IMG/VR virus record: IMGVR_UViG_3300049793_000366
Location: 1 to 64,000 of that record
Strand: one strand, 5' to 3'
Length of the DNA stretch: 64,000 nucleotides
Of this stretch, positions 1,679 to 61,143 are shown piece by piece; within the stretch, counting starts at the first letter, position 1, and each line of letters opens with the position of its first letter. The position numbers and the translations under genes are program-made. The notes under the pieces are model-generated. The model searched no databases. It was not told the DNA's origin and saw only the letters and a list, made by a program, of their open reading frames with translations.

Positions 1679-2035
1679 GTGATTCTGTTTAAGTGGTTAA
1701 ATGAGCAATATATACAACTTAGCTCTTATTTGCGTACTATACAAAAAGCCAAAACCAGTAGAATAGAAGTTGAAAGTGATGTCAAAGGTATCATTGATTT
1801 CTTTCACTACAATGGTGTATATAGCATAAGAGACTACCATGAGTTGAATGATTTAGAAAAATCATTCATAAAATCGATGCTTCGTACCAGAAGCAGACAG
1901 CATCAAATCGAAGTCGAGTTTCATTTAGAATTAGAACTTGCCAATAAGCAACAGTTGAAGCGTATGTTAAAAATGTACGAAGAAGAAGAGAATTATGAAA
2001 AGTGTTCTGTGATTAAGAAGAAGATTGATTCGTAA
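1679..2035 (+). CDS. hypothetical protein with C-terminal UVR (UvrB/C)-like motif
   Basis: Ends EEENYEKCSVIKKKI; start codon uncertain. Confidence 0.5.
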   Translation: MILFKWLNEQYIQLSSYLRTIQKAKTSRIEVESDVKGIIDFFHYNGVYSIRDYHELNDLEKSFIKSMLRTRSRQHQIEVEFHLELELANKQQLKRMLKMYEEEENYEKCSVIKKKIDS

Positions 2036-2480
2036 CATACTTTATGTTATAGAATATTTGAATTGGACATTTGTATTTCTTAAAATCTTTAAATTGAAGC
2101 ATATCAAAGTCAACACAATGATAGGGACCGAAATCATCTTCTCCTTTTAAATCTTGTTCATCGCAAAATTTGAAATCATATTTTAATGTAAACCTTACAA
2201 ACTCCTTTAATAAATAATCTCTTATAAAGAGTTTAGCCTCTTCGTAACTGGAATTATTATACATCGCTGTAATAGTTTCAATATCTGAATCATTCGGAAC
2301 AATTTCAGCACTTATTGTAAATACGTTACTTGGTTCATCAACTACATCGTAGTATACCTCTAATTCATTAACTTCATACGAACACTCTTCGAAATATAGA
2401 GATACCCATTCTTTAACTTTCTGTGTTGATAGAAATTCAGAATTCTCCGTAAGAAGCTTAAATGACTTTAAATATTTCAT
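2013..2480 (-). CDS. hypothetical protein, N-terminal MKYLKSF family
   Basis: MKYLKSFKLLTE; TAATATATA directly upstream. Confidence 0.7.
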   Translation of the reverse strand: MKYLKSFKLLTENSEFLSTQKVKEWVSLYFEECSYEVNELEVYYDVVDEPSNVFTISAEIVPNDSDIETITAMYNNSSYEEAKLFIRDYLLKEFVRFTLKYDFKFCDEQDLKGEDDFGPYHCVDFDMLQFKDFKKYKCPIQIFYNIKYVTNQSSS

Positions 2481-2484
2481 AAAT

Positions 2485-2528
2485 TATATATTAAAAATAA
2501 CCATACAAGATTTGGATTATAATATATA
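2485..2528. promoter_or_regulatory. back-to-back TAATATATA motifs (putative late promoters)
   Basis: Minus 2485-2493, plus 2520-2528. Confidence 0.6.
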
Positions 2529-2532
2529 CCTT

Positions 2533-3252
2533 ATGATTGAATTGAATAAGGTTTACCACGACGATTGTATAAATATTCTAAAGCAAATCAGCGATAAGTC
2601 AGTAGACTTAATACTTACAGACCCTCCGTATATAATTTCACGCAAGAGCAATTTCATTCACGCAACTGAGAATATAGATCCAGTAGTGGTTGGTAAGTTC
2701 TACAAACATTCAATCGATTTTGGTGATTGGGATAAAGAACAACTTAACATTGATGAATTGTTTGCCGAATTCAGTAGAATATTAAGACCCGGTGGAACAG
2801 TGATATGGTTCTATGATGCTTGGAAGATTGGTGAGATAAAGGATATAGCGGAAGGCTTAGACTTTAAGCAACCAAGAATATGTCAATGGGTTAAGAATAA
2901 TCCAGTACCAGTAAACTCTAAACACAATTACCTATCAAATGCTATTGAGTTCTTTGTAACATTTGTAAAGAGAGGTAAGCCAACATTTAATTCGCAATAT
3001 GATAATGGAATTTATAATTACCCAATCTATCACGCGAAAGATAGATTTCACCCAACTCAAAAGCCAATAGAATTATTTAAGGAATTGATTATAAAGCATA
3101 GTGATGAAAATATGATTGTACTTGATCCATTTGCGGGTTCTTCCACGACAGCCATTGCGGCTATGGAAACAAACAGACGATGGATTATGATTGAAAAAAA
3201 TATTGAATATTATGAGAAATCCATCGAAAGACTTAAGCTCGTATATCAGTAG
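2533..3252 (+). CDS. DNA N6-adenine/N4-cytosine methyltransferase (beta class)
   Basis: LTDPPY, HPTQKP, LDPFAGS in beta-class order; ATG 2533 preferred to TTG 2512. Confidence 0.9.
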   Translation: MIELNKVYHDDCINILKQISDKSVDLILTDPPYIISRKSNFIHATENIDPVVVGKFYKHSIDFGDWDKEQLNIDELFAEFSRILRPGGTVIWFYDAWKIGEIKDIAEGLDFKQPRICQWVKNNPVPVNSKHNYLSNAIEFFVTFVKRGKPTFNSQYDNGIYNYPIYHAKDRFHPTQKPIELFKELIIKHSDENMIVLDPFAGSSTTAIAAMETNRRWIMIEKNIEYYEKSIERLKLVYQ

Positions 3253-3412
3253 TATCGTAGATACAATAACAAAGGATGACCCTGTAAGAAAAAGGTGGTT
3301 TCCGGAATATCTCAAGATGAAGTATGTGGATAGATTATCTGCTGAAACATTAGAGGGATTCTGTTTCAGAATGGAGAGAGACAGAAAAATAGATTACATT
3401 ATTAATATATAA
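3212..3412 (+). CDS. small hypothetical protein with C-terminal RDRKIDYII motif
   Basis: Overlaps the methyltransferase end; shared C-terminal motif. Confidence 0.55.
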   Translation: MRNPSKDLSSYISSIVDTITKDDPVRKRWFPEYLKMKYVDRLSAETLEGFCFRMERDRKIDYIINI

Positions 3413-3415
3413 ATT

Positions 3416-4072
3416 ATGAAACATATTAGAACATTTGAAGAGTTAAACTTCGATACATACTACAATGCTGGTAAGAAGCTAAAAGACGAAGCTAAAGTAC
3501 CGGGCGGTAAAAGCTGGGAAAGAGATAAAACAAACACGCATTATAAAAGAGGTGCTGAAATACATAAATGGGCTTATACTAAAGAGTATAAAGATTTAGG
3601 TATTTTGGATGTTTATAGCAACAAAGGTGGTGGTAAAGCTGAGGCTATGATATCATCTTTACATATAGACCCTCTTAGTTTTTTTGAGAGTTTTATAGCT
3701 GAGGATGACCGTCCAGAGACAGGGTATATCACTATGTTTACTCAGGTATATAATATGAGTAGTGATGACGTTGAAGATTTATATTTTATAAACCTTCCAC
3801 TTAGATGGACTAACGATAAATTTCATGTAGATGGTGAACCAAACATAGACACAGATATGATAACATTGAAAGATAGACAATCAGCTATGAAGTTACGTAA
3901 GGCATTGAGTCTTGGGAATTGGATATCTGAGTTATCAAGCGATCCTAAGCTTGATAACTACGATGAGGATCTTGATATTAAGCACCAGTTTATGTTATAC
4001 TCTACACCAGATGAGTATGAAAAAATGATTAATGCATTCAAGAATATATCAGTAAATAAACTATATAAATAA
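3416..4072 (+). CDS. hypothetical protein, N-terminal MKHIRTFEE family
   Basis: N-terminal motif; TAATATATA at 3403. Confidence 0.7.
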   Translation: MKHIRTFEELNFDTYYNAGKKLKDEAKVPGGKSWERDKTNTHYKRGAEIHKWAYTKEYKDLGILDVYSNKGGGKAEAMISSLHIDPLSFFESFIAEDDRPETGYITMFTQVYNMSSDDVEDLYFINLPLRWTNDKFHVDGEPNIDTDMITLKDRQSAMKLRKALSLGNWISELSSDPKLDNYDEDLDIKHQFMLYSTPDEYEKMINAFKNISVNKLYK

Positions 4073-4074
4073 AT

Positions 4075-4362
4075 ATGAACTTTAGAAAAAGAACGAAAGA
4101 GGAAGTTGACTACGCAGTTGACGTTAAAAAAGATTTTACCGGAGGTTATGAATTCATGCCTTGGTTATTATGGATGAGACCTATGTACGTAGTTGGTATG
4201 TTTGGTAACCTAGCATTTGGTATAGCTGGGTGGAAAATAGGAATTGTTGAACAGGATCCTATCGGTTTTGCTGTTGGTGGATTTTTCACAGCCGCATCAA
4301 TATTAATATTCTTCTTACTTAGAAGAGATTTCAAAGAAGGAAAGCAAGGAAAAACAAGATAA
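4075..4362 (+). CDS. small membrane protein
   Basis: Two hydrophobic segments. Confidence 0.6.
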   Translation: MNFRKRTKEEVDYAVDVKKDFTGGYEFMPWLLWMRPMYVVGMFGNLAFGIAGWKIGIVEQDPIGFAVGGFFTAASILIFFLLRRDFKEGKQGKTR

Positions 4363-4363
4363 T

Positions 4364-4399
4364 AAAAAAAGCACTCAATCGAAATCGAGTGCTTTTTTT
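4364..4399. terminator. bidirectional intrinsic terminator
   Basis: AAAAAAAGCACTC..GAGTGCTTTTTT between convergent genes. Confidence 0.8.
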
Positions 4400-5165
4400 A
4401 TTTCCAAATACTTCCTAAATCAATCTTATTATTTATCTCCACTACTTTATTATTATTCTTAACTGAATATTTTGAGAAGCCTTTAAAGCGTTCAATTATA
4501 TTATTGATTCTTGCTTTTTCTGAATCATCCATATCATTATTAAATATCTCTATTAAATTATCAATCTCTGAAAAAGTCAACAATTTTTTATTACCCAAGA
4601 AGTACATAAAATTATAATCATATGTATTGTAAATCTGTGAATTTGGTGCCTGTGACTTTTCTATTAAATAGTGAGTCAATGAAGTTTCTATACCAATTGA
4701 TGGAATAGAATATCTATAACCTTCTATTGTAAATTCTTTAGTATCGATATTAAAACTATCTTTTAATAAATCAGTTAAATTGAAGTAATTGAATTTATCA
4801 GGTGTGAAATCTACAAACTCTTGCTTACCAGTTACATCATTATAATACTCAATCTTAATTGTCTTGTTTTGAGAATAAGATACTATTTGTAAGAATATGA
4901 ATACAACATCAATGCTCTTAATATCTTCAAATGTGTATTTTGATGGCATAGTAGTGTATTTCCTAACTATGTTTTTAACCAGACTCAAAACAACAGCTAT
5001 ATCATTGGTATATAGTTTTTCATATTCAAGAATATCCTCAACTGATGCCTTCTTAATCCATAACCTAAAATCAGCATTGTAGAATATACCCTGAGAAGGT
5101 AAGCTCTTTATCACTATTTCCTTTCGTTTCCTTATTCTATCAAGCCAGTCGAATATAACCTTCAT
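4398..5165 (-). CDS. baseplate hub/tail assembly protein (T4 gp26-like), paralog of 62130..63071
   Basis: LPSQGIFY..IKKASVEDI..IKSIDVVFIFLQI..YSIPSIG parallels LPLGMFY..VRAAQVKEI..VKDGDRIYLIFLI..IAPPTIG. Confidence 0.55.
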   Translation of the reverse strand: MKVIFDWLDRIRKRKEIVIKSLPSQGIFYNADFRLWIKKASVEDILEYEKLYTNDIAVVLSLVKNIVRKYTTMPSKYTFEDIKSIDVVFIFLQIVSYSQNKTIKIEYYNDVTGKQEFVDFTPDKFNYFNLTDLLKDSFNIDTKEFTIEGYRYSIPSIGIETSLTHYLIEKSQAPNSQIYNTYDYNFMYFLGNKKLLTFSEIDNLIEIFNNDMDDSEKARINNIIERFKGFSKYSVKNNNKVVEINNKIDLGSIWK

Positions 5166-5260
5166 TGAGAAATTTTTATTTCTTTATATATCCAAGAAAT
5201 TGCCTTTTGTTCACAGTCAAATTGTAAAAAACCTTAAATTTTAACTTAAACCGCTATAAT

Positions 5261-5292
5261 TTTGCCGATTTAGCATAAAGTTTGTATATTAG
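5261..5292 (+). promoter_or_regulatory. Bacteroidota-type promoter (variant)
   Basis: TTTG-N20-TATATTAG just before ORF 5298. Confidence 0.5.
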
Positions 5293-5297
5293 CATAT

Positions 5298-5774
5298 ATG
5301 AGTATGAACAGAAATAGGGAATATACTAAGGAATTAGCCCAGCGTATTAAGCTTCACTATGAGCATTCCGACTTCAGTAAAAAGTTTATAGAAACTTTAC
5401 TTGAGGATAGAAAATACTGCACTGATAGAATACTCAAAATAGCCAGCGAAGAGTTTAATCGAACACTTTCACATAAAGATGCAATCACGGTTCTACAATA
5501 TGTTCAATTAAATATACATAGACTTGCGGAAACAAGTGGTGTATATGCTGATAGTAGAACAATCGATGCTGTTATGTTTGGTGAACAAGAAGAAGAGATA
5601 AATTACACAAAATTAAACTTCGTACCATCTGCTAAAATCCTATATGATGAAGGATTTTATACAGAAAGCATGAAGCGTTATGGTAATAGTGGGTATATCG
5701 GTTATAACTTAGATTACATCGGTGTTAAAGTAGACCTAAGTGAAGATATTTTAGATTCAGCTCTTACTTATTAA
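5298..5774 (+). CDS. hypothetical protein
   Basis: 158-aa ORF with upstream promoter. Confidence 0.65.
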   Translation: MSMNRNREYTKELAQRIKLHYEHSDFSKKFIETLLEDRKYCTDRILKIASEEFNRTLSHKDAITVLQYVQLNIHRLAETSGVYADSRTIDAVMFGEQEEEINYTKLNFVPSAKILYDEGFYTESMKRYGNSGYIGYNLDYIGVKVDLSEDILDSALTY

Positions 5775-6792
5775 ACCTGTTATAGGCTTGTGTAGTAATC
5801 TGAACGAAGTTTGCATTGCCTTTGAACTCTTCAATCGTTCTGAATCCACAATAGCTCATGTTAGATTTTAAATAATCAGTGAAGTTTTCAACCCAAGAGT
5901 TAAGTGAGTATTCTACTCTATTATATTTAGTGATTCCCTCAGCAGTTTTCAAATCGTCTTTCTTCCAAGTCTTTTGAACTTCTTTAGTTGACATTCCTCT
6001 GTAATACTTATAAATATCTTCACCTAAAGAAAAGCGATTTAAAGCGTCTTCTGAGCCAATTTTGATATATTGCTCACCTACTTTAGTATAACTGTCTGAA
6101 ACGCTCTCTAAACACTTATTAAGTATACCACCAATCATAACTGCATCGGCACCTAAGCCAATTGCTTTTATTATATCAGAGAAGTTTCTAAATCCACCAT
6201 CAGCTATAATCTTAGTAGGATTAGTAAACTCTTTACTGATTACACCACATTCGAATATCAGTGATGCCATAGGGTAGTGAATTGCTACATTAGCTGACGT
6301 TGTGCAAGCAGAACCACCACCAATACCACAGCGCACCCAATCAACACCAATTTTACAAAATTCTCTGTATGTTTCTGGGTTAGCGATATTACCAACCATT
6401 AACTCAACATCGTATTCTTTTTTAATTCGAGAAGCTATATCAAATAACTTCTTCATATGCCCATTCGCGATATCAATAAGAACTTTTTTGGGTAATAATT
6501 TACCCGCTTCTACAATTTCGATTATCTCGTCTAAACCATATGCGTAAAATAAATGTGTATTGCTACCTGTGAAGTTGATACCTCTCGGTAGACAAATATT
6601 TATACCCTTTTCATAAAATTGATTAGCATTATCAGAGCCAATAACAGTGTCCATTGGTGCTGTGAAGAGTGGTAACATATTGATACCATTCTCTACTTTA
6701 AGTGTTGGGCTTACTTCTTTGCGACTATCTATATCACTAATTGTTGCCGGAACAATAGTAATATCGTTCCAATCGAATTTAACTTGACTCAT
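5764..6792 (-). CDS. IMP dehydrogenase/GMP reductase family enzyme (probably GMP reductase)
   Basis: TAPMDTV, DIANGH, GIGGGSACTT catalytic loop, IIADGG, YRGMST..AEG; no CBS domain and no flap RY dyad. Confidence 0.85.
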   Translation of the reverse strand: MSQVKFDWNDITIVPATISDIDSRKEVSPTLKVENGINMLPLFTAPMDTVIGSDNANQFYEKGINICLPRGINFTGSNTHLFYAYGLDEIIEIVEAGKLLPKKVLIDIANGHMKKLFDIASRIKKEYDVELMVGNIANPETYREFCKIGVDWVRCGIGGGSACTTSANVAIHYPMASLIFECGVISKEFTNPTKIIADGGFRNFSDIIKAIGLGADAVMIGGILNKCLESVSDSYTKVGEQYIKIGSEDALNRFSLGEDIYKYYRGMSTKEVQKTWKKDDLKTAEGITKYNRVEYSLNSWVENFTDYLKSNMSYCGFRTIEEFKGNANFVQITTQAYNRFNK

Positions 6793-6821
6793 TTATGTTA
6801 TTTCTTTTTAAGAGGATCCTG

Positions 6822-7085
6822 TTATGGATAGATTGTATAATCCTCTTCAATAGTTACTTCTGCGAATTTGTAACCATCATTTTTCTTAGCAACAAAAAAT
6901 AGTTCGACTGTCTTAAGCTTCAATTCATCAGAATCTTTACCTACTAAAAGAACGTTGAATTCTTTCTCCCACTTCTTACCTATATTATAGGCTTCTGACA
7001 ATTTTTCAATAGCCGTTCTTGATGATTTGTGTGAGTCATAATAAAGTCTTACACTTGCTTCGAATGTTCTGTTCTTAATTTCCAT
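6822..7085 (-). CDS. hypothetical protein
   Basis: 87-aa ORF in a minus-strand gene run. Confidence 0.6.
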   Translation of the reverse strand: MEIKNRTFEASVRLYYDSHKSSRTAIEKLSEAYNIGKKWEKEFNVLLVGKDSDELKLKTVELFFVAKKNDGYKFAEVTIEEDYTIYP

Positions 7086-7116
7086 GTTGGTTATATGAAT
7101 TTAGTAGAGTGAAAGT

Positions 7117-7425
7117 TTAATTAAATAGCCTGTTTATTTGCGTATCTCTGGCTGATTCTGTATCTAAAACATTAAATACGTGAGCATCAAGTTCATAGAA
7201 CATACCAGATTCATAGATTCTGAGCGTACCACGGTCATTTAACACAGATATAGAACTACCATTCAGTTTAATTATTTTGTATATCTTCCCAGGTGTTAAT
7301 GCCGCATTGGCATACGCTCCCCATCTTGGGTTATCAAACCTATAATAAGCATATCGGGATTCACTTGTAACCCTGGCTTGTTTTTTAATTTTAGCTTTAT
7401 CTACTTTTAATCCGTTAAACCACAT
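7117..7425 (-). CDS. hypothetical protein with C-terminal RDTQINRL motif
   Basis: LTPGKIYKI core plus shared C-terminal motif. Confidence 0.65.
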   Translation of the reverse strand: MWFNGLKVDKAKIKKQARVTSESRYAYYRFDNPRWGAYANAALTPGKIYKIIKLNGSSISVLNDRGTLRIYESGMFYELDAHVFNVLDTESARDTQINRLFN

Positions 7426-7427
7426 TT

Positions 7428-8918
7428 TTAATATAGCTGTTCAAATGTTTTTATTTCATTACTTGATACTCTTCGCACTACTTGTTTTTTATTTATGCTG
7501 TGTACCGTTTTTAATCCCATCGCGCCTGCTAAATGCATAACTGAATGAACTGTATTCTTGTGAAAGTTTTTAACTCTCTCTGACTTTCTAACTGGGTCAA
7601 GTGAGTTCCATTTATTTTTATTTTGTGTTGCTACACCAACTGGACATTCATCTGTATTACAAAGTCGTGCTTGAATACAACCCAATGATAACATAAACCC
7701 ACGAGCAGAGTTAACAAGAGACGCACCCATCGATAGGGCTTTCAATACATCAAAGGCATCAATCATTTTACCAGATGCTATGATTTTAATCTCATTTTTC
7801 TTACCATACATAATCATCAGTTTATCAACAATACTAAGCGCATCAATCAATGGTGTTCCAACATTATTTGTAAACTCTAAAGGCGCGGCTCCTGTGCCAC
7901 CCTCTGAACCATCTATTGTTATAAAGTCAGGACAAATATTTAATTTATTCATTGCGATAAATATATCCTCTAATTCAGATGCATTACCAACACATAGTTT
8001 AAATCCAACTGGTTTACCACCTGATAATTGTCTTAACTTCTCAATGAATAAAATTAAACCTTCGGAGTTGTTGAATGATGTATGATAAGGTGGTGAATCA
8101 ATTTGTATGAATGGTTCAACACCTCTGATGTTAGCAATCTCTGGTGTGTTCTTTTTTGCTGGTAAAACACCACCGTGTCCGGGTTTCGCACCTTGTGATA
8201 GCTTAAGTTCAATCATCTTCACCTCTGGTCTTGTTGCGTTCTTAGTAAACATATCGATGTCAAAGTATCTAACACCATTTATTGTTTTACCTGCGCCAAA
8301 ATAACCAGTACCTATTTGAAAGCATAAATCACCACCTTGTAAATGATATTCTGATATCCCACCTTCACCAGTATTATGGTAGAATCCACCCAATTTAGAA
8401 CCTTGATTTAATGATTTGATAGCTGTTGGTGATAAAGCACCATATGACATTGCTGAGATATTTAATATTGATGCGCTGTATGGTTGTTTACAGCGAGAGC
8501 CACCAATTAAAACTCGCGGTTCATCGGCTATCTTAGTAGGATATATTGAATGATTGACCCACTCAGTACCAACTTTCTTTAAATCATGTTGTGTACCGAA
8601 TGGTGTAGAATCTATCTCATTTTTAGAACGCTGATATACGACAGACCTCTGTTCTCTTGTGAACGGAGTTCCGTCGATATCTGTCTCAATAAAATATTGA
8701 AGTAATTTAGGTCTTAGTATTTCTGCGAACCATCTGCCTCGACCAATAATTGGATAATTTCTCCAAAGTGTGTGCTTTGTTTGTTTTACATCAAACAGTG
8801 CAATCACGGCTAACAAGAGAAATATAACGCCCAGTGATAGTAATGATACAGAGCTACTTGTGTAGCCAAAAAATGTAGTAGCGAGTGCTAATGCTAATAG
8901 TGTGTATGTAATTTTCAT
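7428..8918 (-). CDS. FMN-binding glutamate synthase family protein (YerD-like) with N-terminal membrane segment
   Basis: ISAMSYGALS, HNTGEGG, ELKLSQGAKPGHGG, DGSEGGTGAAP, Fe-S motif CIQARLCNTDECPVGVATQ. Confidence 0.92.
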   Translation of the reverse strand: MKITYTLLALALATTFFGYTSSSVSLLSLGVIFLLLAVIALFDVKQTKHTLWRNYPIIGRGRWFAEILRPKLLQYFIETDIDGTPFTREQRSVVYQRSKNEIDSTPFGTQHDLKKVGTEWVNHSIYPTKIADEPRVLIGGSRCKQPYSASILNISAMSYGALSPTAIKSLNQGSKLGGFYHNTGEGGISEYHLQGGDLCFQIGTGYFGAGKTINGVRYFDIDMFTKNATRPEVKMIELKLSQGAKPGHGGVLPAKKNTPEIANIRGVEPFIQIDSPPYHTSFNNSEGLILFIEKLRQLSGGKPVGFKLCVGNASELEDIFIAMNKLNICPDFITIDGSEGGTGAAPLEFTNNVGTPLIDALSIVDKLMIMYGKKNEIKIIASGKMIDAFDVLKALSMGASLVNSARGFMLSLGCIQARLCNTDECPVGVATQNKNKWNSLDPVRKSERVKNFHKNTVHSVMHLAGAMGLKTVHSINKKQVVRRVSSNEIKTFEQLY

Positions 8919-8935
8919 TTATGTGTAATATTGTC

Positions 8936-8967
8936 CAAATATACGGAACATAAATGAAAAATACAAA
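8936..8967 (-). promoter_or_regulatory. Bacteroidota primary-sigma promoter
   Basis: TTTG-N20-TATATTTG upstream of the glutamate-synthase-like gene. Confidence 0.75.
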
Positions 8968-8971
8968 TATT

Positions 8972-9100
8972 TTAGTGATTAACTAAAAGATATGAACCGA
9001 TTATGAAAGCACCTAATAATACAAGCCATCCAATTGGAATTGTTTCGCCTTTACTGTGGTCAACCACAAATAATTTACCGGCAAGTTTTAATTTTCTCAT
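8972..9100 (-). CDS. small membrane protein (42 aa, not in ORF track)
   Basis: MRKLKLAGKLFVVDHSKGETIPIGWLVLLGAFIIGSYLLVNH; fills a gap in the minus-strand run. Confidence 0.45.
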   Translation of the reverse strand: MRKLKLAGKLFVVDHSKGETIPIGWLVLLGAFIIGSYLLVNH

Positions 9101-54003: not shown

Positions 54004-54042
54004 AAAGTTAATATATAATTATAATAAAAATATTATAAATAC

Positions 54043-54471
54043 ATGAAGCATATAAAAACATTTGAACAATATTCACCAGCAACCGAAGTGAATGAAGAAC
54101 TATTTGGTAAATTATTACAAGGTGGTAAAGACTTCATCATCGATGGTAAATCGTTAGCAGAACTTAAAACTAAATATGCTAATGTAGTTAAAGATGGTCA
54201 GGTTATTTCTAAAGCTAAAGAACAACCACTTGTTACTATTGAAGAAGGTAAACCATTAAGAGGTAACCCACCTACGATGGCTCGTATTAAAGAACTTAAA
54301 GCAAAATATAACATGGATGATGCACAAGCTTTAGAAGCGACATTAAAGATTTACGATTGGAATGGTAACATTTTAATGGATGGTGAGAAGTCAACATTTG
54401 ACACTAACACTAAGAAGTTCACAGTTATTCAAGCTAAAAGCACAAGAGGAACAGGTTTTAACGTAAGTTAA
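54043..54471 (+). CDS. hypothetical protein, N-terminal MKHIKTFE family
   Basis: MKHIKTFEQY..EVNEE; TAATATATA at 54009. Confidence 0.7.
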   Translation: MKHIKTFEQYSPATEVNEELFGKLLQGGKDFIIDGKSLAELKTKYANVVKDGQVISKAKEQPLVTIEEGKPLRGNPPTMARIKELKAKYNMDDAQALEATLKIYDWNGNILMDGEKSTFDTNTKKFTVIQAKSTRGTGFNVS

Positions 54472-54947
54472 ACAATATAAAACTTTATTTGAAAATTACA
54501 GAAGCCGACCATACGATATCCGTACTGGTCGTTTTCTGTATATTGGTTAAACCCCTTCCATTCAATGATGTTATTCTTATATTCAGCGGGGTTATATGAA
54601 TTTTGTATTGTATCATTTATTTTAAACTCATACTGAGTCTTAAATCCGTCTTTTTCTAAAAACTTTCTTCTTCTATCTAATAATGTTTTGATAGTATCGA
54701 ATTCTTTTTTAGCATCATCTTCTGGTATTCTTCTTTTACAAACAATTAATAAATATCCTGCTCCTTTTTCTGGAATCAACTGATATCCTTCTTCTGCTAA
54801 TGGGAAAAATAATTCATGTTCTATTTGCTTTACGTCAGTCATGTTTCTAATCATGCGTCTTAAAGCATTGTGCAATTCGTCAAGAACACCACCTATTTTA
54901 TTGTAGTACTTATCATCAAATGATTCGAATGTTTCTAAATTTCTCAT
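54468..54947 (-). CDS. hypothetical protein, N-terminal MRNLETFESF
   Basis: N-terminal motif. Confidence 0.7.
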   Translation of the reverse strand: MRNLETFESFDDKYYNKIGGVLDELHNALRRMIRNMTDVKQIEHELFFPLAEEGYQLIPEKGAGYLLIVCKRRIPEDDAKKEFDTIKTLLDRRRKFLEKDGFKTQYEFKINDTIQNSYNPAEYKNNIIEWKGFNQYTENDQYGYRMVGFCNFQIKFYIV

Positions 54948-55696
54948 TCTACTAATTTTGGCATTGTATCTATTCGAGATTCTGCTAAATCCAATAGTTT
55001 TTCTTTATATGTGTTTAATGTTTGTAAATTACTTTCCGTTAACTCTTTTCTATTTAACATTGGTTCTAAATCCGGGTAATGTTTGATTATACCAGACTTT
55101 GTATAAGAATCTGGTTCATTACCATCGATTAGAGAAAAGAATTGACCAAACTGAAAAGCCATTACTTTATAGATATCTTTAATAGACTCTTTCTTTCCTG
55201 GAAAGTCAGTCATAGTTACGAAATCAATCTGTCTTATTACAGGAAGTTTTAATCTTAAATCGCCGCGCAATGCTGGTTTAACTACTGTTCTAAGATGAGA
55301 ACGAGAATAGAATGATAAGATACCTCTACACACTCTTAATAACTTTTGATTAGTGTCTCTTTGTACTACTGATTTTATTTGGTTATCAAAATATTGTTTG
55401 TGATTATCATAAGTATAATACAAAGCATTATTTACCTCATCAGCAGTGCCTTTGAATACTTTAACAATATGACCATTCTCAAGAACAGCTAAATTGCAGT
55501 TTAAAACCTTATCAGATAAAAGATTAGATAATTCAGCATTATAATGTTTACATATGTTATGAGCCGCATCAATATTTTGAGGAATATCATCAACAAATAT
55601 CATTACGTCATAGTCTTGACTATTCTCAGATCCAAAGATTTGAAAAACATAGTCTATATTTTCAGCCATTTCATTGAACTTTTTAAGATATTTCAT
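54944..55696 (-). CDS. putative Pol-beta-fold nucleotidyltransferase with MKYLKKFNE leader
   Basis: IFGSENSQDYDVMIFV fits hG[S]xxxxDxDhhh. Confidence 0.55.
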   Translation of the reverse strand: MKYLKKFNEMAENIDYVFQIFGSENSQDYDVMIFVDDIPQNIDAAHNICKHYNAELSNLLSDKVLNCNLAVLENGHIVKVFKGTADEVNNALYYTYDNHKQYFDNQIKSVVQRDTNQKLLRVCRGILSFYSRSHLRTVVKPALRGDLRLKLPVIRQIDFVTMTDFPGKKESIKDIYKVMAFQFGQFFSLIDGNEPDSYTKSGIIKHYPDLEPMLNRKELTESNLQTLNTYKEKLLDLAESRIDTMPKLVE

Positions 55697-56075
55697 TAAT
55701 GAGTAGTTTTATGTCAATTGTTTTAAATCTAAATAAAATTGATGTATAAGGACCCGTTAAATATTCAGAATTACCCTCTGTTAATTCTAACTCATATTTC
55801 TTAGCAAATTTAGTCAATTTATTTCTAATATCCTCAATTAATGGATCATTTATTATAAATTTAAAGTCATAGCAAATGTTACCGTATGAATCTTTAGCTA
55901 CTCTATCTTCATCTAAACCAGGATAGGGTTTTTTATATATAAATTGTACTTGTTCATCAGCGTCATATTCCTCAAACTCAATGTATAAAAGCCTTTCAAG
56001 TGAACCTTTAGCTACTGAAAAATCTGAAAATGTTACTTGATTTTCATTTATAAATTCGGAGTAGTTCTTCTTCAT
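55683..56075 (-). CDS. hypothetical protein, N-terminal MKKNYSEFINE
   Basis: CTS-like N-terminus; TTTATATATA upstream. Confidence 0.7.
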   Translation of the reverse strand: MKKNYSEFINENQVTFSDFSVAKGSLERLLYIEFEEYDADEQVQFIYKKPYPGLDEDRVAKDSYGNICYDFKFIINDPLIEDIRNKLTKFAKKYELELTEGNSEYLTGPYTSILFRFKTIDIKLLINEIS

Positions 56076-56111
56076 GTTGTATATATAAAGAAGAATTCTC
56101 GTTTTTTTATT

Positions 56112-56120
56112 TAATATATA
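56112..56120 (+). promoter_or_regulatory. putative late promoter of the tail tube gene
   Basis: TAATATATA. Confidence 0.6.
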
Positions 56121-56197
56121 CTAAAGAGTTAATGCCCAGAATAGGTTGGAACATAAGCTTGATAAATATATAGAGTAATAAAAATAATATAGAAGAT

Positions 56198-56815
56198 ATG
56201 CCATTACCGCATTTTACAAACGTAACCAGTCATTTCGGTGATAACCAAGGTCCATTCGAAGCAGTGTACCCAGGGTTATTCGAGATATCATTTGTTTTGC
56301 CTGCTACATTAGTAGCTCAAAATAGAGATCCATTAATGTTGTTAGAAAACGCAACTAACATTTCAGGATTCGAGTTAACACCAACTATCAATGAGCAGTC
56401 TCAAAGATTCAAGTACTCTACTAGAGTTTACTTACCTCTTCCTGAGAAGACTCACACTACGTTTGATATTACATTCAACGTAAATGTGAATCACGCTGGT
56501 TCTATGTACACATGGAATACACTTAGGTCTTGGTATGACTTACTTTGGAATTCACAAGTAGGTACTAACTTCTACAAAAGAGATATGGTAGGTACTGTTA
56601 TCGTTAACCAACACGATAAGAAAGGTTTCATCATTAGAAGAATCACTTTCCACAATACTCAAATTAAAGGTATTGATGGTGCTGTATCTGAACTTGACTG
56701 GTCAAAAACTGGTGATATCGTAACTGGAACAAAGGCATCTTTCGTATGTGATTACTGGACTGATGAATGGATTGATCCAAACTACGCTCAAGTATTACCA
56801 CCATTATCGGTATAA
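56198..56815 (+). CDS. tail tube protein (T4 gp19-like)
   Basis: MPLPHF start, FEISF..P, ITFNVN, LRSWYDL..N, ELDW, F.CDYW; TAATATATA upstream. Confidence 0.7.
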   Translation: MPLPHFTNVTSHFGDNQGPFEAVYPGLFEISFVLPATLVAQNRDPLMLLENATNISGFELTPTINEQSQRFKYSTRVYLPLPEKTHTTFDITFNVNVNHAGSMYTWNTLRSWYDLLWNSQVGTNFYKRDMVGTVIVNQHDKKGFIIRRITFHNTQIKGIDGAVSELDWSKTGDIVTGTKASFVCDYWTDEWIDPNYAQVLPPLSV

Positions 56816-56862
56816 TTCTAAACTAAAGAAGCTAATATATGAAAAATATAAAATCAATAGAT

Positions 56863-57459
56863 ATGAAACATTTAAAGTCTTTTCAGATGTTTGAAAACGA
56901 AGGGCAAGTAGCCCCAGCAGAAGCTACAAAAGCACCTGCTGAAATGCCAGTTGACAGAGCGGCTGTTGAAGCTGTTGTTAAAAAGCAATCACCAGAGCAA
57001 TTACAACAATTTGTTAATGAGTTAGCACAGAAACTTGGTTTAAGTGTCGAACAACTTAAAGACGAAGAGTTGGTTAAGTCTAAATTGGCTGAATTGACAA
57101 AGAATGAATCTTTTGAAGTTGATGAGACAAATGAAGGTTTAAAAGATATGTTTGCTTCTTTAAAAGCTAAAGCTGCTAAAATACTTACTTGGGCTGGTTT
57201 AGGTACAGTGGCGGGTGGTCTTATTAATTTGGCAATTGATGCTGGATTTAACGAACACGCTATAAACGCGGCTGATTATACAGGTGCTACATTACACATG
57301 AGTAGTATGGCAATAGCTTCAATTATAGCTTTGGTAGCTGGTACTGCAATGACTGTTGTTGGTATGAAGAATCTACCAAAAACTGCGACAGCGGGTGCTG
57401 AGTTATCCGATGCTCAAAAAGCTCAAATAGCAAGAAGAAAAGCAAGATTTGGTAGATAA
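56863..57459 (+). CDS. membrane-segment protein with MKHLKSFQMFE leader
   Basis: Alternative start 56839 (MKNIKSID); acidic N-half with NES/NEG sites; two C-terminal hydrophobic helices. Confidence 0.7.
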   Translation: MKHLKSFQMFENEGQVAPAEATKAPAEMPVDRAAVEAVVKKQSPEQLQQFVNELAQKLGLSVEQLKDEELVKSKLAELTKNESFEVDETNEGLKDMFASLKAKAAKILTWAGLGTVAGGLINLAIDAGFNEHAINAADYTGATLHMSSMAIASIIALVAGTAMTVVGMKNLPKTATAGAELSDAQKAQIARRKARFGR

Positions 57460-57677
57460 TGAAACACTTACAATCATTTAACGAACATAACGCTACACCT
57501 GCAATCTACCACAGTAGAATTACAAAGGGTAAGACCAAAGTCTCTTATGATGATAAAAAGGGTGTTATAATTGACACTGATGTAGACTCAGAAAAAATAC
57601 TAAACGTACACATCAAATATGAAGATGGTACTGATGGATGGGAAGTCGCTGATGATACTAAGATGAAATACATTTAA
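57459..57677 (+). CDS. small protein, N-terminal MKHLQSFNE
   Basis: N-terminal motif. Confidence 0.7.
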   Translation: MKHLQSFNEHNATPAIYHSRITKGKTKVSYDDKKGVIIDTDVDSEKILNVHIKYEDGTDGWEVADDTKMKYI

Positions 57678-57678
57678 T

Positions 57679-57711
57679 AAAAACCCTCAAAAATCAATTT
57701 GAGGGTTTTTT
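57679..57711. terminator. bidirectional intrinsic terminator
   Basis: AAAACCCTCAAA..TTTGAGGGTTTT. Confidence 0.8.
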
Positions 57712-58072
57712 ATTTAGTTTCGAGTTTAATGCGCTTTATTTCGAGAATACATTCTAATGAATATCTTTCTTCTTCTGATTTAATTAAATCTTTCTCAGAT
57801 TTCTTATTATATTTAGTAAAGATGAATGCGTGAAATGCTACGTTTATAATTAATGCGATAGGGTGTGTTAAGTTCTCCCACTTAGCTCCACATAAATAAG
57901 CACTAAACATACCAAGACAAACACATAGAGTTGCAACTATGAAAGCAAATAATTTAGAATCTAAAAAAATAAGAGTCTTAAGTAATAAAATAGCTAAGTT
58001 TACTTCTTTCATAGATTTATCTCCAAACTCAGTTTGAATTTCTGCTAATATTGTAAGTTTATCTTTTCTCAT
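57710..58072 (-). CDS. membrane protein
   Basis: Two hydrophobic helices. Confidence 0.6.
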   Translation of the reverse strand: MRKDKLTILAEIQTEFGDKSMKEVNLAILLLKTLIFLDSKLFAFIVATLCVCLGMFSAYLCGAKWENLTHPIALIINVAFHAFIFTKYNKKSEKDLIKSEEERYSLECILEIKRIKLETK

Positions 58073-58101
58073 ATCTTTTTAGTTTAGAGTTATTGTGAAT
58101 A

Positions 58102-58133
58102 CAAATATATATTAAATAATCCGGATTTCCAAA
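58102..58133 (-). promoter_or_regulatory. Bacteroidota promoter overlapping a TAATATATA motif
   Basis: TTTG-N20-TATATTTG; TAATATATA at 58106-58114. Confidence 0.7.
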
Positions 58134-58217
58134 TTTTCATCCACTATTTTTGGACATTTTTTAAATTTTCTTCAATTTTACTATTAAATATACAACAAAA
58201 GTACCATAAAAGCAAGC

Positions 58218-58247
58218 AAAAAACCCAGTCTAAATAGACTGGGTTTC
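58218..58247 (-). terminator. intrinsic terminator
   Basis: AAACCCAGTCTA-AA-TAGACTGGGTTT. Confidence 0.75.
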
Positions 58248-58249
58248 AA

Positions 58250-59197
58250 TTAGTTAAGCTTAATACCCGTTACTGGGTCATAGTTTAAAATAAGAATTTC
58301 TAAACCTTTTGTTTGTTCTCCTTTATTTTCGTGATTATTACCACCTTGAGCAGAACTTCTGAATACTTCCTTTTCAGTCCAGTAGTATTTATCTCTTGGT
58401 AGAATTTCTTCAAGTAATGGGAAATAGTAATATGATAATGACCAACGACTCTTAGTAGTTTTCAATAACTCTAATAATCTTCTATGTGATTGAGGTCCAA
58501 ATACACCCTCAGCATCACAGCCATACCAAAATAATCTACGAGCATCATCTTCGCCTTTCTCTTCGTTAAATCTCGCATATGGAGGGTCTAAGTAGATATA
58601 AGTATCATCAGCATCATATTTAGTAATAAGCTCTTCAAAATCGATGTTATACCAATTGGTGATTGAATTAAGTTTGTCTGTGTATGTATTCTTTTTAAGT
58701 TTATTGATTAAAATCTCTAACTTAAGTTTGTCGTGAGATTTCTTATAACCATTGAAACCAGCACCGCGAGGATATACTGAATTATGAGCAGATGTAATTA
58801 AGAAAGCATACATAGCCGCTTTTTCAAAGTCACCAATCTCAAAGTCTGAATTATCTAAGAAGTCATTCTTAACATACTCTCTGTATATTGCTTTAAAGAA
58901 ATCCCATTTCTTTAAAGGGTCTGTTTCAGTAGTGAATAATACTGTTGATTTAAGTTTATCAATAGCATTAAGCATTTTCTCTGGTTCAGAGCAACATCTA
59001 TAAAGATTTACTTGATGCCTATTTTTATCATTGTAGACAACCGTATCAAATATAAGTGATGGGTCATCCATATATGTTCCCATTGAACCGCTAAATGGTT
59101 CGAGATATGTGTTTATACCACTTTTGGGTATTTTAGAGTTAATGAACTCAATAAAGGCGTTTGATGATTTACCACCGAAATAACTGATAACAGACAT
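58250..59197 (-). CDS. DNA adenine methyltransferase (Dam/D12 class)
   Basis: ISYFGGKS, EPFSGS, VYND, IYLDPPY. Confidence 0.88.
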   Translation of the reverse strand: MSVISYFGGKSSNAFIEFINSKIPKSGINTYLEPFSGSMGTYMDDPSLIFDTVVYNDKNRHQVNLYRCCSEPEKMLNAIDKLKSTVLFTTETDPLKKWDFFKAIYREYVKNDFLDNSDFEIGDFEKAAMYAFLITSAHNSVYPRGAGFNGYKKSHDKLKLEILINKLKKNTYTDKLNSITNWYNIDFEELITKYDADDTYIYLDPPYARFNEEKGEDDARRLFWYGCDAEGVFGPQSHRRLLELLKTTKSRWSLSYYYFPLLEEILPRDKYYWTEKEVFRSSAQGGNNHENKGEQTKGLEILILNYDPVTGIKLN

Positions 59198-59284
59198 TTT
59201 TCCATTGCTTATTTTTATAAGTCTTATAGAAGTTGTATTTCCAAAAGTTTAATATATACTAAAATTAAGTCCTGTAAGAACTGT

Positions 59285-59797
59285 ATGAAATACATTAAAA
59301 TGTTTGAAAATTACGATGAGCGATTTTCTAAAATAGAAAGAGTTTTGCGTAGTTTAAACTTTAGAAAGAATAGAGATCCTAAGCCTATACATATCGTTGG
59401 TGGTGGTAATGGTAGTGGTAAAATGCACTCAATTAAAACTGTATTAGACCAGATGGACGAGGAATATATTATAATAAATACAAACGAAGCTACACCAACA
59501 TCATTCTATATGACCTTATATGAGTATAGTGATAGTGATACTATCGTTGTTATTGATGAGATGTGTAATAATTCAAGCACTAATAATCAAGCAAGAATAA
59601 ACAAAACCATTGCTCAATTGTGTAAGGGTGAAATGATAACACATCCATATCCCAATGCTCCAAATCCACCTAATACTATATTACAATTTGAATTTAAAGG
59701 AAGAGTAATATTATCAACAGCAGATTTGACAAATACCAGAGATATTAGTGGACTATACGATAAAAATTTAAACACTATATTTTTGGGATTTAGTTAA
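59285..59797 (+). CDS. short degenerate AAA-like ATPase with MKYIKMFE leader
   Basis: GGNGSGKM Walker A variant, VVIDE, FEFKGRVILST; resembles the 44799 protein. Confidence 0.55.
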   Translation: MKYIKMFENYDERFSKIERVLRSLNFRKNRDPKPIHIVGGGNGSGKMHSIKTVLDQMDEEYIIINTNEATPTSFYMTLYEYSDSDTIVVIDEMCNNSSTNNQARINKTIAQLCKGEMITHPYPNAPNPPNTILQFEFKGRVILSTADLTNTRDISGLYDKNLNTIFLGFS

Positions 59798-59800
59798 AGT

Positions 59801-59826
59801 AAAAAATCCAGTCATTGACTGGATTT
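59801..59826. terminator. bidirectional intrinsic terminator
   Basis: AAATCCAGTC-ATT-GACTGGATTT. Confidence 0.8.
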
Positions 59827-59827
59827 C

Positions 59828-59954
59828 TGGTCTCATTTATCACCGTAACTCGTAAGCAAGAAGACCAATTCTCTTACTCACCACCTAATGAACAACAGAT
59901 ATTAATCTGAGCCCCATCTTTCCGATGGCATGATAAAGTGTATCTCTCGATACA
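59828..59954 (-). ncRNA. putative structured ncRNA downstream of tmRNA
   Basis: GAGA-tetraloop hairpin; closing stem TTTATCAT/GTGATAAA enclosing three hairpins; possible TGGTCT/AGACCA pseudoknot. Confidence 0.5.
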
Positions 59955-59955
59955 G

Positions 59956-60348
59956 GGTGGAGAAGACGGGAATCGAACCCGTGTCCAATGATATCAGTGA
60001 ACTACTTTCTACAAGTTTATTTTAGTTTTCTAACTAAACCAAATAATCAATTTTTTTAACGACTAAAGAGATAATATGTCGCCGATTCAGTTATATACCA
60101 CTTGTGTCGAGAACTGTGGTTCCGAAGATTTTGTCGATTTTAAGCAATCTCAAGTTCTTCAACTTGAGTAGCAGTAGTCTTAGACTTTGCTAATACACTT
60201 AAAATATCGGATAACGATCCGACTTCGTTTGTAATTACGTTGCCGTTTACAGATTTTATCTACTAATTTATTAATCGCACGTTTTATTAGACAAAGCGAT
60301 ACTTGCTTATAACTCTCATCTCATCACCGTCGAAGCCTTAACTTCCCC
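59956..60348 (-). ncRNA. ssrA: tmRNA
   Basis: 5' GGGGAAG pairs with 3' CTTCTCC-A giving G3:U; TTCGAC D-loop analogue; T arm ACGGG-TTCGATT-CCCGT; internal tag frame 60244-60140. Confidence 0.93.
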
Positions 60349-60368
60349 GTTTACTGATTAAAGTATGA

Positions 60369-60377
60369 TATATATTA
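60369..60377 (-). promoter_or_regulatory. putative late promoter of tmRNA
   Basis: TAATATATA 20 nt upstream of the tmRNA 5' end. Confidence 0.6.
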
Positions 60378-60411
60378 CAATGGAAAAGGAAAGTTTTTCT
60401 ATTTTGAATAT

Positions 60412-61143
60412 TTATTTTCTTAATTTATCTTGTTCATCCATTATTCTCAACATTTCTGGTTCATTACCAGCTTGAATAGCCTTTCTCAACTCTTTATTTA
60501 AGTCATCATATCTTTTATTATTAGCCCACTTTTGTAATTCACCTTCATCACTACCTAAGCCATATCCATACCTATATACTTGAATAACTAATAATAAAAG
60601 CTCTGGATATTCTTCATCTTCATGGTCTTCTATAAACTTTTTATAAATATTTCTATCATTTATTGATTGTTGTATATCTATACACGTAGCTAATACCGAT
60701 CCAGATTTTATCTCTGGCCCTTTATAGTTTAACTTCTTATCATCTATTTTATCAAAATTAGCCATCTTCATCATATCCGACATTAGCTCTTGAAAATCCA
60801 CTCTGAAATCTGAATTTGGATTTAATGGTTTATGATAACCAATACTATACCCAACATTAATTATGTATGCTACTAATTGCTGAGTGGATGATTTTGGTGT
60901 ATTAAATATCTCAGTATATGTAATATCACCGAAGTGTTCATCAATAATACTTTTTATTTTATTATCATCAAGATAATCTAATTGATAGTTTGTTGTTATT
61001 AGTTTAGTTATAACATTCACAAATTCTACTAAATGTTCCTTAGCATATTCAACGTCAGCTTGTGTACTAGCATTCATAGCCGCTATTTGTTTATCAAGCT
61101 CATCTCTATCAAAGCTTTCGTTAAATTTCTTAAGATATTTCAT
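60412..61143 (-). CDS. hypothetical protein, N-terminal MKYLKKFNES
   Basis: True start likely 61143; TAATATATA at 61149-61157. Confidence 0.7.
   Translation of the reverse strand: MKYLKKFNESFDRDELDKQIAAMNASTQADVEYAKEHLVEFVNVITKLITTNYQLDYLDDNKIKSIIDEHFGDITYTEIFNTPKSSTQQLVAYIINVGYSIGYHKPLNPNSDFRVDFQELMSDMMKMANFDKIDDKKLNYKGPEIKSGSVLATCIDIQQSINDRNIYKKFIEDHEDEEYPELLLLVIQVYRYGYGLGSDEGELQKWANNKRYDDLNKELRKAIQAGNEPEMLRIMDEQDKLRK

Follow-up and report, generated by a model that had tools for sequence, protein, structure and literature searches.

Phage T4 loads its internal proteins IPI, IPII and IPIII into the head by means of a capsid targeting sequence (CTS), a 10-20-residue N-terminal peptide carried by small, hypervariable and otherwise unrelated proteins (PMC3012670, PMC5694885), and in the T-even phages these proteins are diverse while only the CTS is conserved (PMC3012670). 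The T4 peptide starts with M-K, followed by an aromatic residue and then Glu-Phe (MKTYQEFIAEA, MKTFKEF...), and it operates in a phage with a gp20 portal, a gp23 capsid protein and a gp21 protease that cuts after Glu. In the giant phages phiKZ, 201phi2-1 and SPN3US many head-internal ejection and inner-body proteins are likewise processed after Glu by a gp21-related protease, and their propeptides are thought to target proteins into the prohead (PMC5694885); those propeptides, however, are 80-160 residues long and share no single consensus, and about 8-19 proteins are processed out of about 50 known head proteins. In cellular systems, the cargo-loading peptides of encapsulins and the encapsulation peptides of bacterial microcompartments also sort diverse cargo into a protein shell through a short terminal peptide on a flexible linker, but the shell-protein context differs and the peptide is not removed by proteolysis; the likeness drawn here is one of mechanism only.

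Here we analysed a 64,000-nucleotide window (positions 1 to 64,000 of IMG/VR record IMGVR_UViG_3300049793_000366) from a ~712-kb Mahaphage-like megaphage, in which a first-pass annotation had noticed a shared N-terminal peptide on about 18 unrelated proteins and had proposed a portable tag for capsid loading. The dominant form of this tag has three residues more than the T4 CTS ([HY]-[LI]-K) and ends in N-E-S, F-E-S or K-I-F-E-S rather than F-I-A-E-A, and a single ten-residue consensus marks more than 100 genes in one genome, where T4 has about three. It further differs from the T4 system in that the protease is fused to the scaffold and many of the genes appear to be leaderless. A literature search found no paper that holds the motif.

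Results

The observation holds: all 18 coordinates are true ORF starts with the residues reported for them. Thirteen ORFs carry M-K-[HY]-[LI]-[KR]-x-[FY] with a Glu within positions 8-11, two carry a T4-like variant and three are doubtful. The features are as follows.

2013..2480 (-), tagged ORF, 155 aa, starting MKYLKSFKLL; TAATATATA motif 4 nt upstream.
3416..4072 (+), tagged ORF, 218 aa, starting MKHIRTFEEL; motif 4 nt upstream; first 22 residues resemble the conserved portal-adjacent tagged family of relatives.
28388..28702 (-), tagged ORF, 104 aa, starting MKYLKSFEVF and continuing into a Gly-rich linker; motif 4 nt upstream.
29393..30115 (-), ORF, 240 aa, with the T4-like variant MLKYLEFITEAK, 7/12 identical, in register, to T4 IPII/IPIII MKTYQEFIAEAR; second in a run behind the promoter at 30602-30610.
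43561..43950 (+), tagged ORF, 129 aa, starting MRFLKKFKEV; motif 5 nt upstream.
43934..44377 (+), tagged ORF, 147 aa, starting MKGLIKKFND, with the tag core shifted by one residue.
44361..44780 (+), doubtful member, 139 aa; RNIKKFVD begins at residue 7 and the core score is about 0.
44799..46202 (+), tagged ORF, 467 aa, starting MKKWIKSFESF; motif 19 nt upstream; P-loop/STAND-like region (phrog_1250); the only clearly tagged window gene with a homologue in the relative.
46376..48112 (+), doubtful member, 578 aa, starting MKYIRSRQTH; the homologue in the relative starts MKWILPRNRFINEA.
48114..49772 (+), doubtful member, 552 aa, starting MRKLLLYEAF; core score 5.6.
54043..54471 (+), tagged ORF, 142 aa, starting MKHIKTFEQY; motif 25 nt upstream.
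54468..54947 (-), tagged ORF, 159 aa, starting MRNLETFESF, inside a co-oriented run.
54944..55696 (-), tagged ORF, 250 aa, starting MKYLKKFNEM, inside a co-oriented run.
55683..56075 (-), ORF, 130 aa, with the T4-like variant MKKNYSEFINEN; a TTATATATA variant of the motif 4 nt upstream.
56863..57459 (+), tagged ORF, 198 aa, starting MKHLKSFQMF and continuing into a Pro/Ala-rich linker; one membrane-like hydrophobic segment.
57459..57677 (+), tagged ORF, 72 aa, starting MKHLQSFNEH.
59285..59797 (+), tagged ORF, 170 aa, starting MKYIKMFENY; motif 26 nt upstream.
60412..61143 (-), tagged ORF, 243 aa, starting MKYLKKFNES; best score in the window; motif 5 nt upstream.
1666..61157, twenty exact TAATATATA sites, read as the phage late promoter, starting at 1666+, 2485-, 2520+, 3403+, 18229-, 20549+, 28028+, 28707-, 30602-, 30626+, 43520-, 43547+, 44771+, 50934+, 54009+, 56112+, 58106-, 59250+, 60369- and 61149-.

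The frequency of the motif relative to chance had been set beforehand as a test, and a strict pattern, M[KR]x[LIV][KRQE]xF, gave 13 six-frame hits in the window, eleven of them at the starts of long ORFs, whereas an order-2 Markov model expected 0.57 with a maximum of 3. With a position matrix built from the window plus a related genome, 13 window ORFs pass. The ORFs at 30115- and 56075- fail that matrix, but they match a pattern taken from the real T4 IPII/IPIII N-terminus, [YF]xEF[IV]xE, and are the only two hits to it in the window, both of them at ORF starts. The proteins share no similarity beyond the tag (no blastp hit at E<0.01), and both synonymous codons are used at every tag position, so the peptide is what is conserved. 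The TAATATATA motif occurs 20 times against 5.1 expected and lies 4-5 nt before the ATG of five tagged ORFs and 19-26 nt before three more, while the other tagged ORFs lie in co-oriented runs. The functional labels of the first-pass annotation (ATPases, an NTase, an LRR protein and a membrane protein) are mostly unsupported: 44799+ has only sub-threshold AAA_16/nSTAND3 hits and a match to phrog_1250, 56863+ has one membrane-like segment, and no Pfam evidence was found for a nucleotidyltransferase or an LRR protein.

The scale is far larger than the 18 proteins first noticed. In a 642-kb relative, 111-131 of 919 genes (12-14%; 121-131 in one count) carry the tag, in 109 blastp clusters with lengths from 58 to 460 aa, against 0.14-0.25% of internal-Met controls. 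More than 120 viral contig stretches match in IMG/VR, a lower bound, whereas only 106 stretches match in 596 Gb of prokaryote genomes, fifty of them not at ORF starts and the multi-hit ones being AT-rich MAG contigs. The tag is thus largely confined to viral sequence in these scans.

Tagged proteins are small, soluble, domain-less and hypervariable ORFans, like the T-even internal proteins. Membrane-like segments occur in 4 of 121 tagged proteins against 84 of 704 untagged, and 1 of 15 tagged window genes is conserved in the relative against 33 of 60 untagged genes (p = 9e-4). In a conserved family of 53 members, residues 1-15 are nearly invariant while the rest is 38-66% identical, yet the tag lies outside the predicted fold (AF2 mean pLDDT 87, but below 50 for residues 1-9). 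A Glu is found within residues 4-13 in 97% of tags, the residue after it is Ser in 42% against a 7% background, and a polar, acidic linker follows. The tag does not have the hydrophobic core of 10-15 residues after a basic N-terminus of Sec or lipoprotein signal peptides: it is polar, with hydrophobic residues only at positions 1, 4, 7 and 10 and acidic residues at 8-11. Nor does it fit mobile promoter cassettes (T4 PeSL-like), which would show near-identical DNA repeats spanning promoter and gene start, as only the 9-nt promoter is shared at DNA level and the codons of the tag differ among copies.

The AATATATA motif precedes the portal, protease-scaffold, MCP, TerL and tail-fibre genes but not the replication genes (the gp43, gp44, gp46 or gp47 homologues), and we therefore read it, by promoter class only, as a late promoter. 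It precedes 61 of 121 tagged genes (50%) against 145 of 847 untagged genes (17%), a three-fold enrichment, whereas the host-type TAnnTTTG box precedes 7 of 121 tagged against 104 of 847 untagged genes. The late promoter also drives non-structural genes, such as the tmRNA and a methyltransferase; late timing alone does not imply packaging.

The window's own phage has a T4-type head module, with Portal_T4, Gp23 and a 757-aa protease-scaffold holding coiled-coil repeats (about 12 YSEY[IL]AENLDKNI repeats); in the relative, Portal_T4 scores 1.3e-57 and Gp23 3.7e-28. The Pfam Peptidase_S77 hit is only sub-threshold, but a 16-sequence profile of the protease domain hits the T4 prohead protease structure 5JBL at E 8.5e-5, hhalign against T4 gp21 gives 94% probability (E 1.4e-7), and the His and Ser motifs (GExxHP and VSSR) are conserved. 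The scaffold repeats and the MCP N-terminus carry [IL]-A-E and I-N-E. Conserved tagged genes lie next to the portal and the MCP in many relatives. No cultured member was found, and Tenacibaculum phage PTm1, the nearest cultured phage checked and a distant relative with the same head module, shows no tags in 25 kb.

Discussion

The proposal of the first-pass annotation, that the peptide is a capsid-targeting tag, is partly supported by our results. We consider a T4-type capsid-targeting propeptide, greatly expanded in number, to be the best explanation, with moderate confidence. In this view the tagged genes would be transcribed late, from the same [TA]AATATATA promoter class as the head genes and in many cases as leaderless or nearly leaderless transcripts; the flexible, basic-aromatic peptide M-K-[HY]-[LI]-K-x-[FY], which is not part of the protein's fold, would dock the new protein onto the scaffolding core of the assembling prohead; the gp21-family protease fused to that scaffold would cut after the conserved Glu at position 8, 9 or 11, often followed by Ser; and the mature soluble protein would stay in the head and enter the host with the DNA. 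Our data establish that the tag exists, is conserved at the peptide level and is largely confined to viral sequence in the scans made, that tagged genes share a promoter class with the head genes, and that the phage has a T4-type head module with a gp21-like protease; they also show a resemblance to the T4 CTS, limited to a short core, whereas docking, cleavage, encapsidation and injection are inferred from sequence alone.

Several features sit uneasily with this model. The core [KR]x[YF]xEF is enriched 30-fold at N-termini, but the dominant tag differs from the T4 CTS and T4 IP N-termini score negatively under the tag matrix, so the similarity lies in a short core and could be convergent. Only about 40-64% of tags contain a hydrophobic-x-Glu site ([ILVF]-x-E in 64%) like the [IL]-x-E sites of T4 and of this phage's own scaffold and MCP, and the common ...K-x-F-E-S form does not fit that rule. 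One tagged window protein has a membrane-like segment, and the distant relative PTm1, with the same head module, shows no tags in 25 kb. More than 100 cargo species per phage also has no precedent that we know of, T4 having a handful.

It is possible, although less likely, that the tag is a short docking motif for some other phage-specific late process, involving a phage chaperone, an unfoldase or protease that times protein turnover, or a protein compartment other than the capsid. A flexible peptide that lies outside the fold and is more conserved than the protein body is typical of any linear recognition motif, a share of 12-14% of genes is easier to reconcile with a general sorting or regulatory signal than with head cargo, and many tags lack a canonical [IL]-x-E site. 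Yet no candidate partner or compartment was identified, and the short-core resemblance to the T4 CTS, the T4-type head with a gp21-like protease and the tagged genes inside the head module all point to the head.

A translation feature, that is, an optimal 5' coding sequence or nascent peptide for initiation on leaderless late mRNAs, possibly with phage-modified ribosomes and without a targeting role, seems very unlikely. The promoter motif does end 4-8 nt before the ATG of most tagged genes that have it, which implies leaderless or near-leaderless mRNAs, and there is some codon bias (AAA is 86% at position 2, and C-ending His/Tyr codons are enriched at position 3). However, about 65 untagged genes have the same 4-8 nt arrangement with unrelated N-termini, half of the tagged genes have no promoter of their own and 11 have 18-26 nt leaders, synonymous sites vary at all positions with substitutions conservative by residue class (H/Y, L/I, K/R, F/Y), and the conserved Glu-Ser and following linker lie beyond any plausible initiation region.

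Least likely is a functionless by-product of gene shuffling through a promoter-plus-start-codon cassette, or the last trace of one ancient, fast-diverging paralogous family, since, although promoter and tag are often adjacent and could act as a recombination joint, although some tagged genes form paralogue clusters (of 21 and 7 members) and although tagged genes turn over quickly, DNA-level identity among copies is low, synonymous sites differ, there are 109 clusters with lengths from 58 to 460 aa, and the tag is under stronger constraint than the rest of the protein in the orthologous family described above, which a neutral remnant would not show.

A broader reading, which we offer only tentatively, is that megaphages of this clade use one universal ten-residue tag to load more than a hundred different, rapidly turning-over soluble proteins, about an eighth of their coding repertoire, into the capsid. 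If so, host takeover and counter-defence would be carried out largely by pre-made injected proteins rather than by early gene expression. To our knowledge, that would be the largest virion-delivered protein arsenal described for a virus, and it would also give a simple, portable packaging signal.

Occurrence of the shared peptide in the window

The window is 33% G+C, and the first-pass annotation, which had listed 18 otherwise unrelated ORFs beginning with a similar short peptide, was correct in its observation: all 18 are genuine ORF starts with the residues reported. A strict pattern, M[KR]x[LIV][KRQE]xF, occurs 13 times in the six-frame translation and eleven of these are at the first residues of long ORFs, whereas an order-2 Markov model of the window gives 0.57 on average and never more than 3. 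Beyond the peptide the proteins share nothing, since all-against-all blastp found no pair at E<0.01, and the codons underneath it differ from copy to copy (AAA/AAG, TAT/TAC, TTA/CTT/ATT/ATA, TTT/TTC). A position matrix built from the window and a related genome accepts 13 window ORFs. Two more, 30115- and 56075-, belong to a variant closer to the T4 sequence, and three (44361+, 46376+ and 48114+) are doubtful.

Related phages and the scale of tagging

Megablast of 24 kb of the window against GenBank phages found no match. A conserved SpoVR-like protein nevertheless links the window, at about 71% identity, to the uncultured huge phages LR756502 and LR745206, of 635-642 kb. One window protein is recorded on a contig of 711,805 bp, and part of the window lies on a 185-kb Logan contig. 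By major capsid protein (MCP) the nearest cultured phages infect Bacteroidota (Tenacibaculum PTm1, PTm5 and pT24, Chryseobacterium MA9V, Flavobacterium MaF61, and the Prevotella Lak phages), with Sphingomonas phage PAU also among them; all are at 25-30% identity, and those other than the Lak phages at 25-27%. The 25-kb head region of PTm1 has no tag, so that no virion proteome can be borrowed from it. Among more distant megaphages, the head regions of LR756504 and LR756500 showed no tags in 42 kb each, while LR756501 (735 kb) showed four diverged ones; within positions 38082-40891 of the stretch examined, its tags have a longer prefix, for example MEKFNNLKTYEEY and MEKFRKLKTFENY, and the tag therefore seems to evolve between clades.

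In the complete genome of LR756502 (hereafter the relative) we called 968 genes, of which 121 carry the tag in fixed register; 111-131 of 919 genes (12-14%) carry it when the core is allowed to slide, whereas only 0.14-0.25% of internal methionines used as controls score as tags. The tagged ORFs fall into 109 blastp clusters, the largest with 21 and 7 members, so paralogy among the tagged proteins was rejected here as in the window. The consensus is M-K-[HY]-[LI]-[KR]-x-[FY]-[NEK]-[E/I/L/S]-[F/S]-E.

A degenerate DNA pattern for one variant matched at least 120 stretches in IMG/VR, on contigs of 4 to 640 kb and 19 to 53% G+C; most are AT-rich (20-35%), and the few G+C-rich ones lack first-ATG tags. 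Their flanks hold further tagged ORFs that the pattern could not have selected. The same pattern found only 106 stretches in 596 Gb of bacterial and archaeal genomes, of which fifty are not at ORF starts. The 20 with several tags are AT-rich MAG contigs, with up to 10 tags per 8 kb, and are most likely mis-binned phage. For example, several contigs of one bacterial MAG (JALOAD01, 'Ca. Muiribacterium halophilum' bin; loci L135, L159, L172 and L195 of our scan) carry 6-10 tagged small ORFs per 6-8 kb at 26-27% G+C, most likely a huge-phage genome binned into a bacterial MAG. In these scans the tag is largely confined to viral sequence.

Selection on the peptide

Both synonymous codons are used at every tag position (Lys5 53:47, Glu9 63:37, Glu11 56:44), the only bias is at positions 2-3, and substitutions keep the residue class. 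One tagged family is conserved, a 157-aa protein with 53 homologues, in which residues 1-15 are nearly invariant while the rest is 38-66% identical. AlphaFold gives a confident predicted fold (mean pLDDT 87) but scores below 50 for residues 1-9; the most conserved segment is therefore not part of the predicted fold, as expected for a recognition peptide. A fold search with this model found no PDB match at E<0.1. After the tag comes a stretch that is poor in hydrophobic residues and rich in polar and acidic ones.

Promoter class and inferred timing

The motif TAATATATA occurs 20 times in the window against 5.1 expected. In the relative, AATATATA lies within 80 nt upstream of the portal, protease-scaffold, MCP, large terminase and tail-fibre genes and of the gene for a 1,891-aa protein, and the same holds for the portal, protease-scaffold and capsid genes of the window's own phage. 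It does not precede the homologues of T4 gp43, gp44, gp46 and gp47, and we therefore read it as the late promoter; it resembles the T4 late promoter TATAAATA. A phmmer search with T4 gp55 and gp33 found no homologue in the relative, so that a late sigma factor was not identified, although for such short and divergent proteins this does not show absence. The motif precedes 61 of 121 tagged genes against 145 of 847 untagged genes, while the host-type box TAnnTTTG precedes 7 of 121 tagged genes against 104 of 847 untagged genes.

In the relative, spacing from the motif to the ATG is bimodal, being 4-8 nt for most tagged genes and about 65 untagged genes, and 18-30 nt for the structural genes. In the window the motif ends only 4-5 nt before a start codon at 1666-1674, 2485-2493, 3403-3411, 28707-28715, 30602-30610, 43547-43555, 50934-50942 and 61149-61157, although one such ORF (1679+) would start with GTG. 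The short class implies leaderless or near-leaderless late mRNAs, which is an inference. Pairs of the motif also lie back to back on opposite strands, 15-25 nt apart, at 2485-2528, 30602-30634 and 43520-43555, forming divergent late-promoter pairs between oppositely oriented genes. Other features of the window are as follows:

11999-13507 (-), SpoVR-like protein (phrog_35217, 2.3e-172), shared with the huge phages, with Ralstonia phage RsoM2USA (54%) and, distantly, with Thermus phages
13984-15510 (-), Glu/Gln-tRNA-synthetase-like ORF
19206-20408 (-), nucleotidyltransferase (phrog_388, probably CCA-adding)
20581-28011 (+), co-oriented run of tail-fibre-like genes behind one late promoter, including internal paralogues (23440/24147/24725 and 25224/26609)
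37770-43493 (-), 1,907-aa protein with no family match (only a faint CBM_5_12 hit), 48% identical to the 1,891-aa protein of the relative, both with a late promoter; probably a large virion protein
49769-50884 (-), Mre11/SbcD-like nuclease homologous to T4 gp47 (7.4e-24)
51775-54003 (+), class I tRNA synthetase (Pfam tRNA-synt_1 and Anticodon_1)
59955-60348 (-), full-length tmRNA (Rfam RF00023, 83.6 bits), its tag peptide read by ARAGORN as AKSKTTATQVEELEIA, with a TAATATATA site about 20 nt upstream at 60369-60377

Judged by eye, the regions upstream of the three translation-related genes (13984-15510, 51775-54003 and 19206-20408) show host-type TAnnTTTG-like boxes and not the late motif. Besides the gp47 homologue in the window, there are gp43, gp44 and gp46 homologues in the relative, and the T4-like core therefore extends to replication and recombination genes.

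The head module

Searches with phmmer, using T4 proteins from NC_000866, found in the relative a gp17 terminase (4.5e-48), a gp20 portal (1.7e-27) and a gp18 sheath; the last ORF of the window is part of the sheath gene. Pfam gives Portal_T4 at 1.3e-57 and Gp23 at 3.7e-28. Between the portal and capsid genes lies a 699-aa protein (25272-27371 of L005, a stretch of the relative) whose first 160 residues match the T4 prohead protease: a profile of 16 sequences hits PDB 5JBL at 8.5e-5, hhalign against T4 gp21 gives 94% probability at E 1.4e-7, and the His and Ser motifs are kept. The rest holds about 14 tandem 13-residue repeats of YSEY[IL]AENLDKNI. Phage PTm1 has the same fusion, annotated as 'prohead core scaffolding protein and protease'. 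The window's own contig, followed beyond the window, holds the same set: terminase, Portal_T4, a 757-aa protease-scaffold with about 12 such repeats (12556-14829 of L328, a stretch of that contig outside the window) and Gp23. In the fusions of the relative and of the window's own phage an acidic Glu/Gly-rich stretch follows the repeats.

T4 gp23 loses 65 residues and IPI loses 19 (PMC5694885, PMC3012670). In the T4 sequences these sites read L-T-E/A and I-T-E/A (the slash marking the site), and the capsid targeting sequence (CTS) of IPII and IPIII ends I-A-E/A. The megaphage scaffold repeats ([IL]-A-E/N) and the invariant MCP segment WM.EYAE.HSINENAY carry the same kind of site.

Likeness of the tag to the T4 CTS

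The T4 N-termini are MKTYQEFIAEA (IPII, IPIII) and MKTFKEFTS... (IPI). The core [KR]x[YF]xEF is 30 times more frequent in the first ten residues of the relative's proteins than elsewhere. The pattern [YF]xEF[IV]xE occurs twice in the window's six frames, both times at ORF starts: 30115- MLKYLEFITEAK, which is 7/12 identical to T4 in register, and 56075- MKKNYSEFINEN. Hybrids such as MKNIKTYEDFVNEE join the two forms, and the dominant form reads as the T4 core with [HY]-[LI]-K inserted after M-K. The first Glu falls at position 8, 9 or 11 in 103 of 121 tags, and the next residue is Ser in 42%, against a 7% background.

Nature of the tagged proteins

The tagged proteins are small (median 157 aa) and mildly acidic (median pI 5.3), and rarely have a membrane-like segment (4 of 121, against 84 of 704). 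Pfam and PHROGs searches of the 18 window proteins, and Pfam searches of 20 tagged proteins of the relative, found almost nothing, the exceptions being one PPK2, one weak DHH domain and one STAND-like P-loop, so that function cannot be read from domains. They also turn over fast: one of 15 window genes has a homologue in the relative, against 33 of 60 untagged genes (p = 9e-4), and window protein 3416+ has only two relatives among 5.8 billion proteins. This matches the description of T-even internal proteins as a diverse set with only the CTS conserved (PMC3012670). In many relatives a tagged gene sits just before the portal gene and another just after the capsid gene.

Interpretation and significance

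The simplest reading is a T4-type capsid-targeting propeptide used on a genome-wide scale. The first-pass proposal that the peptide is a portable tag for loading proteins into the head is thus partly supported: the tag, the constraint on it, its association with the promoter class of the head genes and the presence of a T4-type head module come from the analysis itself, whereas every step from docking through cleavage and packaging to injection is inferred from sequence alone, without any virion data. Several points count against this reading, namely the number of cargo species, for which no precedent is known, the imperfect fit of many tags to an [IL]-x-E site, the possibility that a ten-residue likeness is convergent, and the absence of the tag from the 25 kb of PTm1. 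Full-text literature searches for tag strings found no paper in the collection searched that contains the motif, and searches combining huge phages with targeting found nothing relevant.

It may instead be that the peptide is another late sorting or regulatory signal, and this cannot be excluded. A translation feature is disfavoured because untagged leaderless genes exist, tags occur inside operons and the constraint is on the peptide. A recombination or paralogy remnant is disfavoured by the stronger constraint on the tag than on the protein body.

The CTS principle is established for a few internal proteins of T4, and the present reading would extend it to a genome-scale sorting system. It also suggests a minimal peptide for loading foreign proteins into very large capsids, and gives a simple sequence marker for finding such phages and their cargo in metagenomes. 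Huge phages are known almost only from metagenomes, and most of their genes have no assigned function. A single recognisable tag on 12-14% of their genes would give a first functional handle on more than a hundred 'dark' genes per genome, marking them as late-made proteins that are probably packaged and injected, and so as prime candidates for anti-defence and host-takeover factors.
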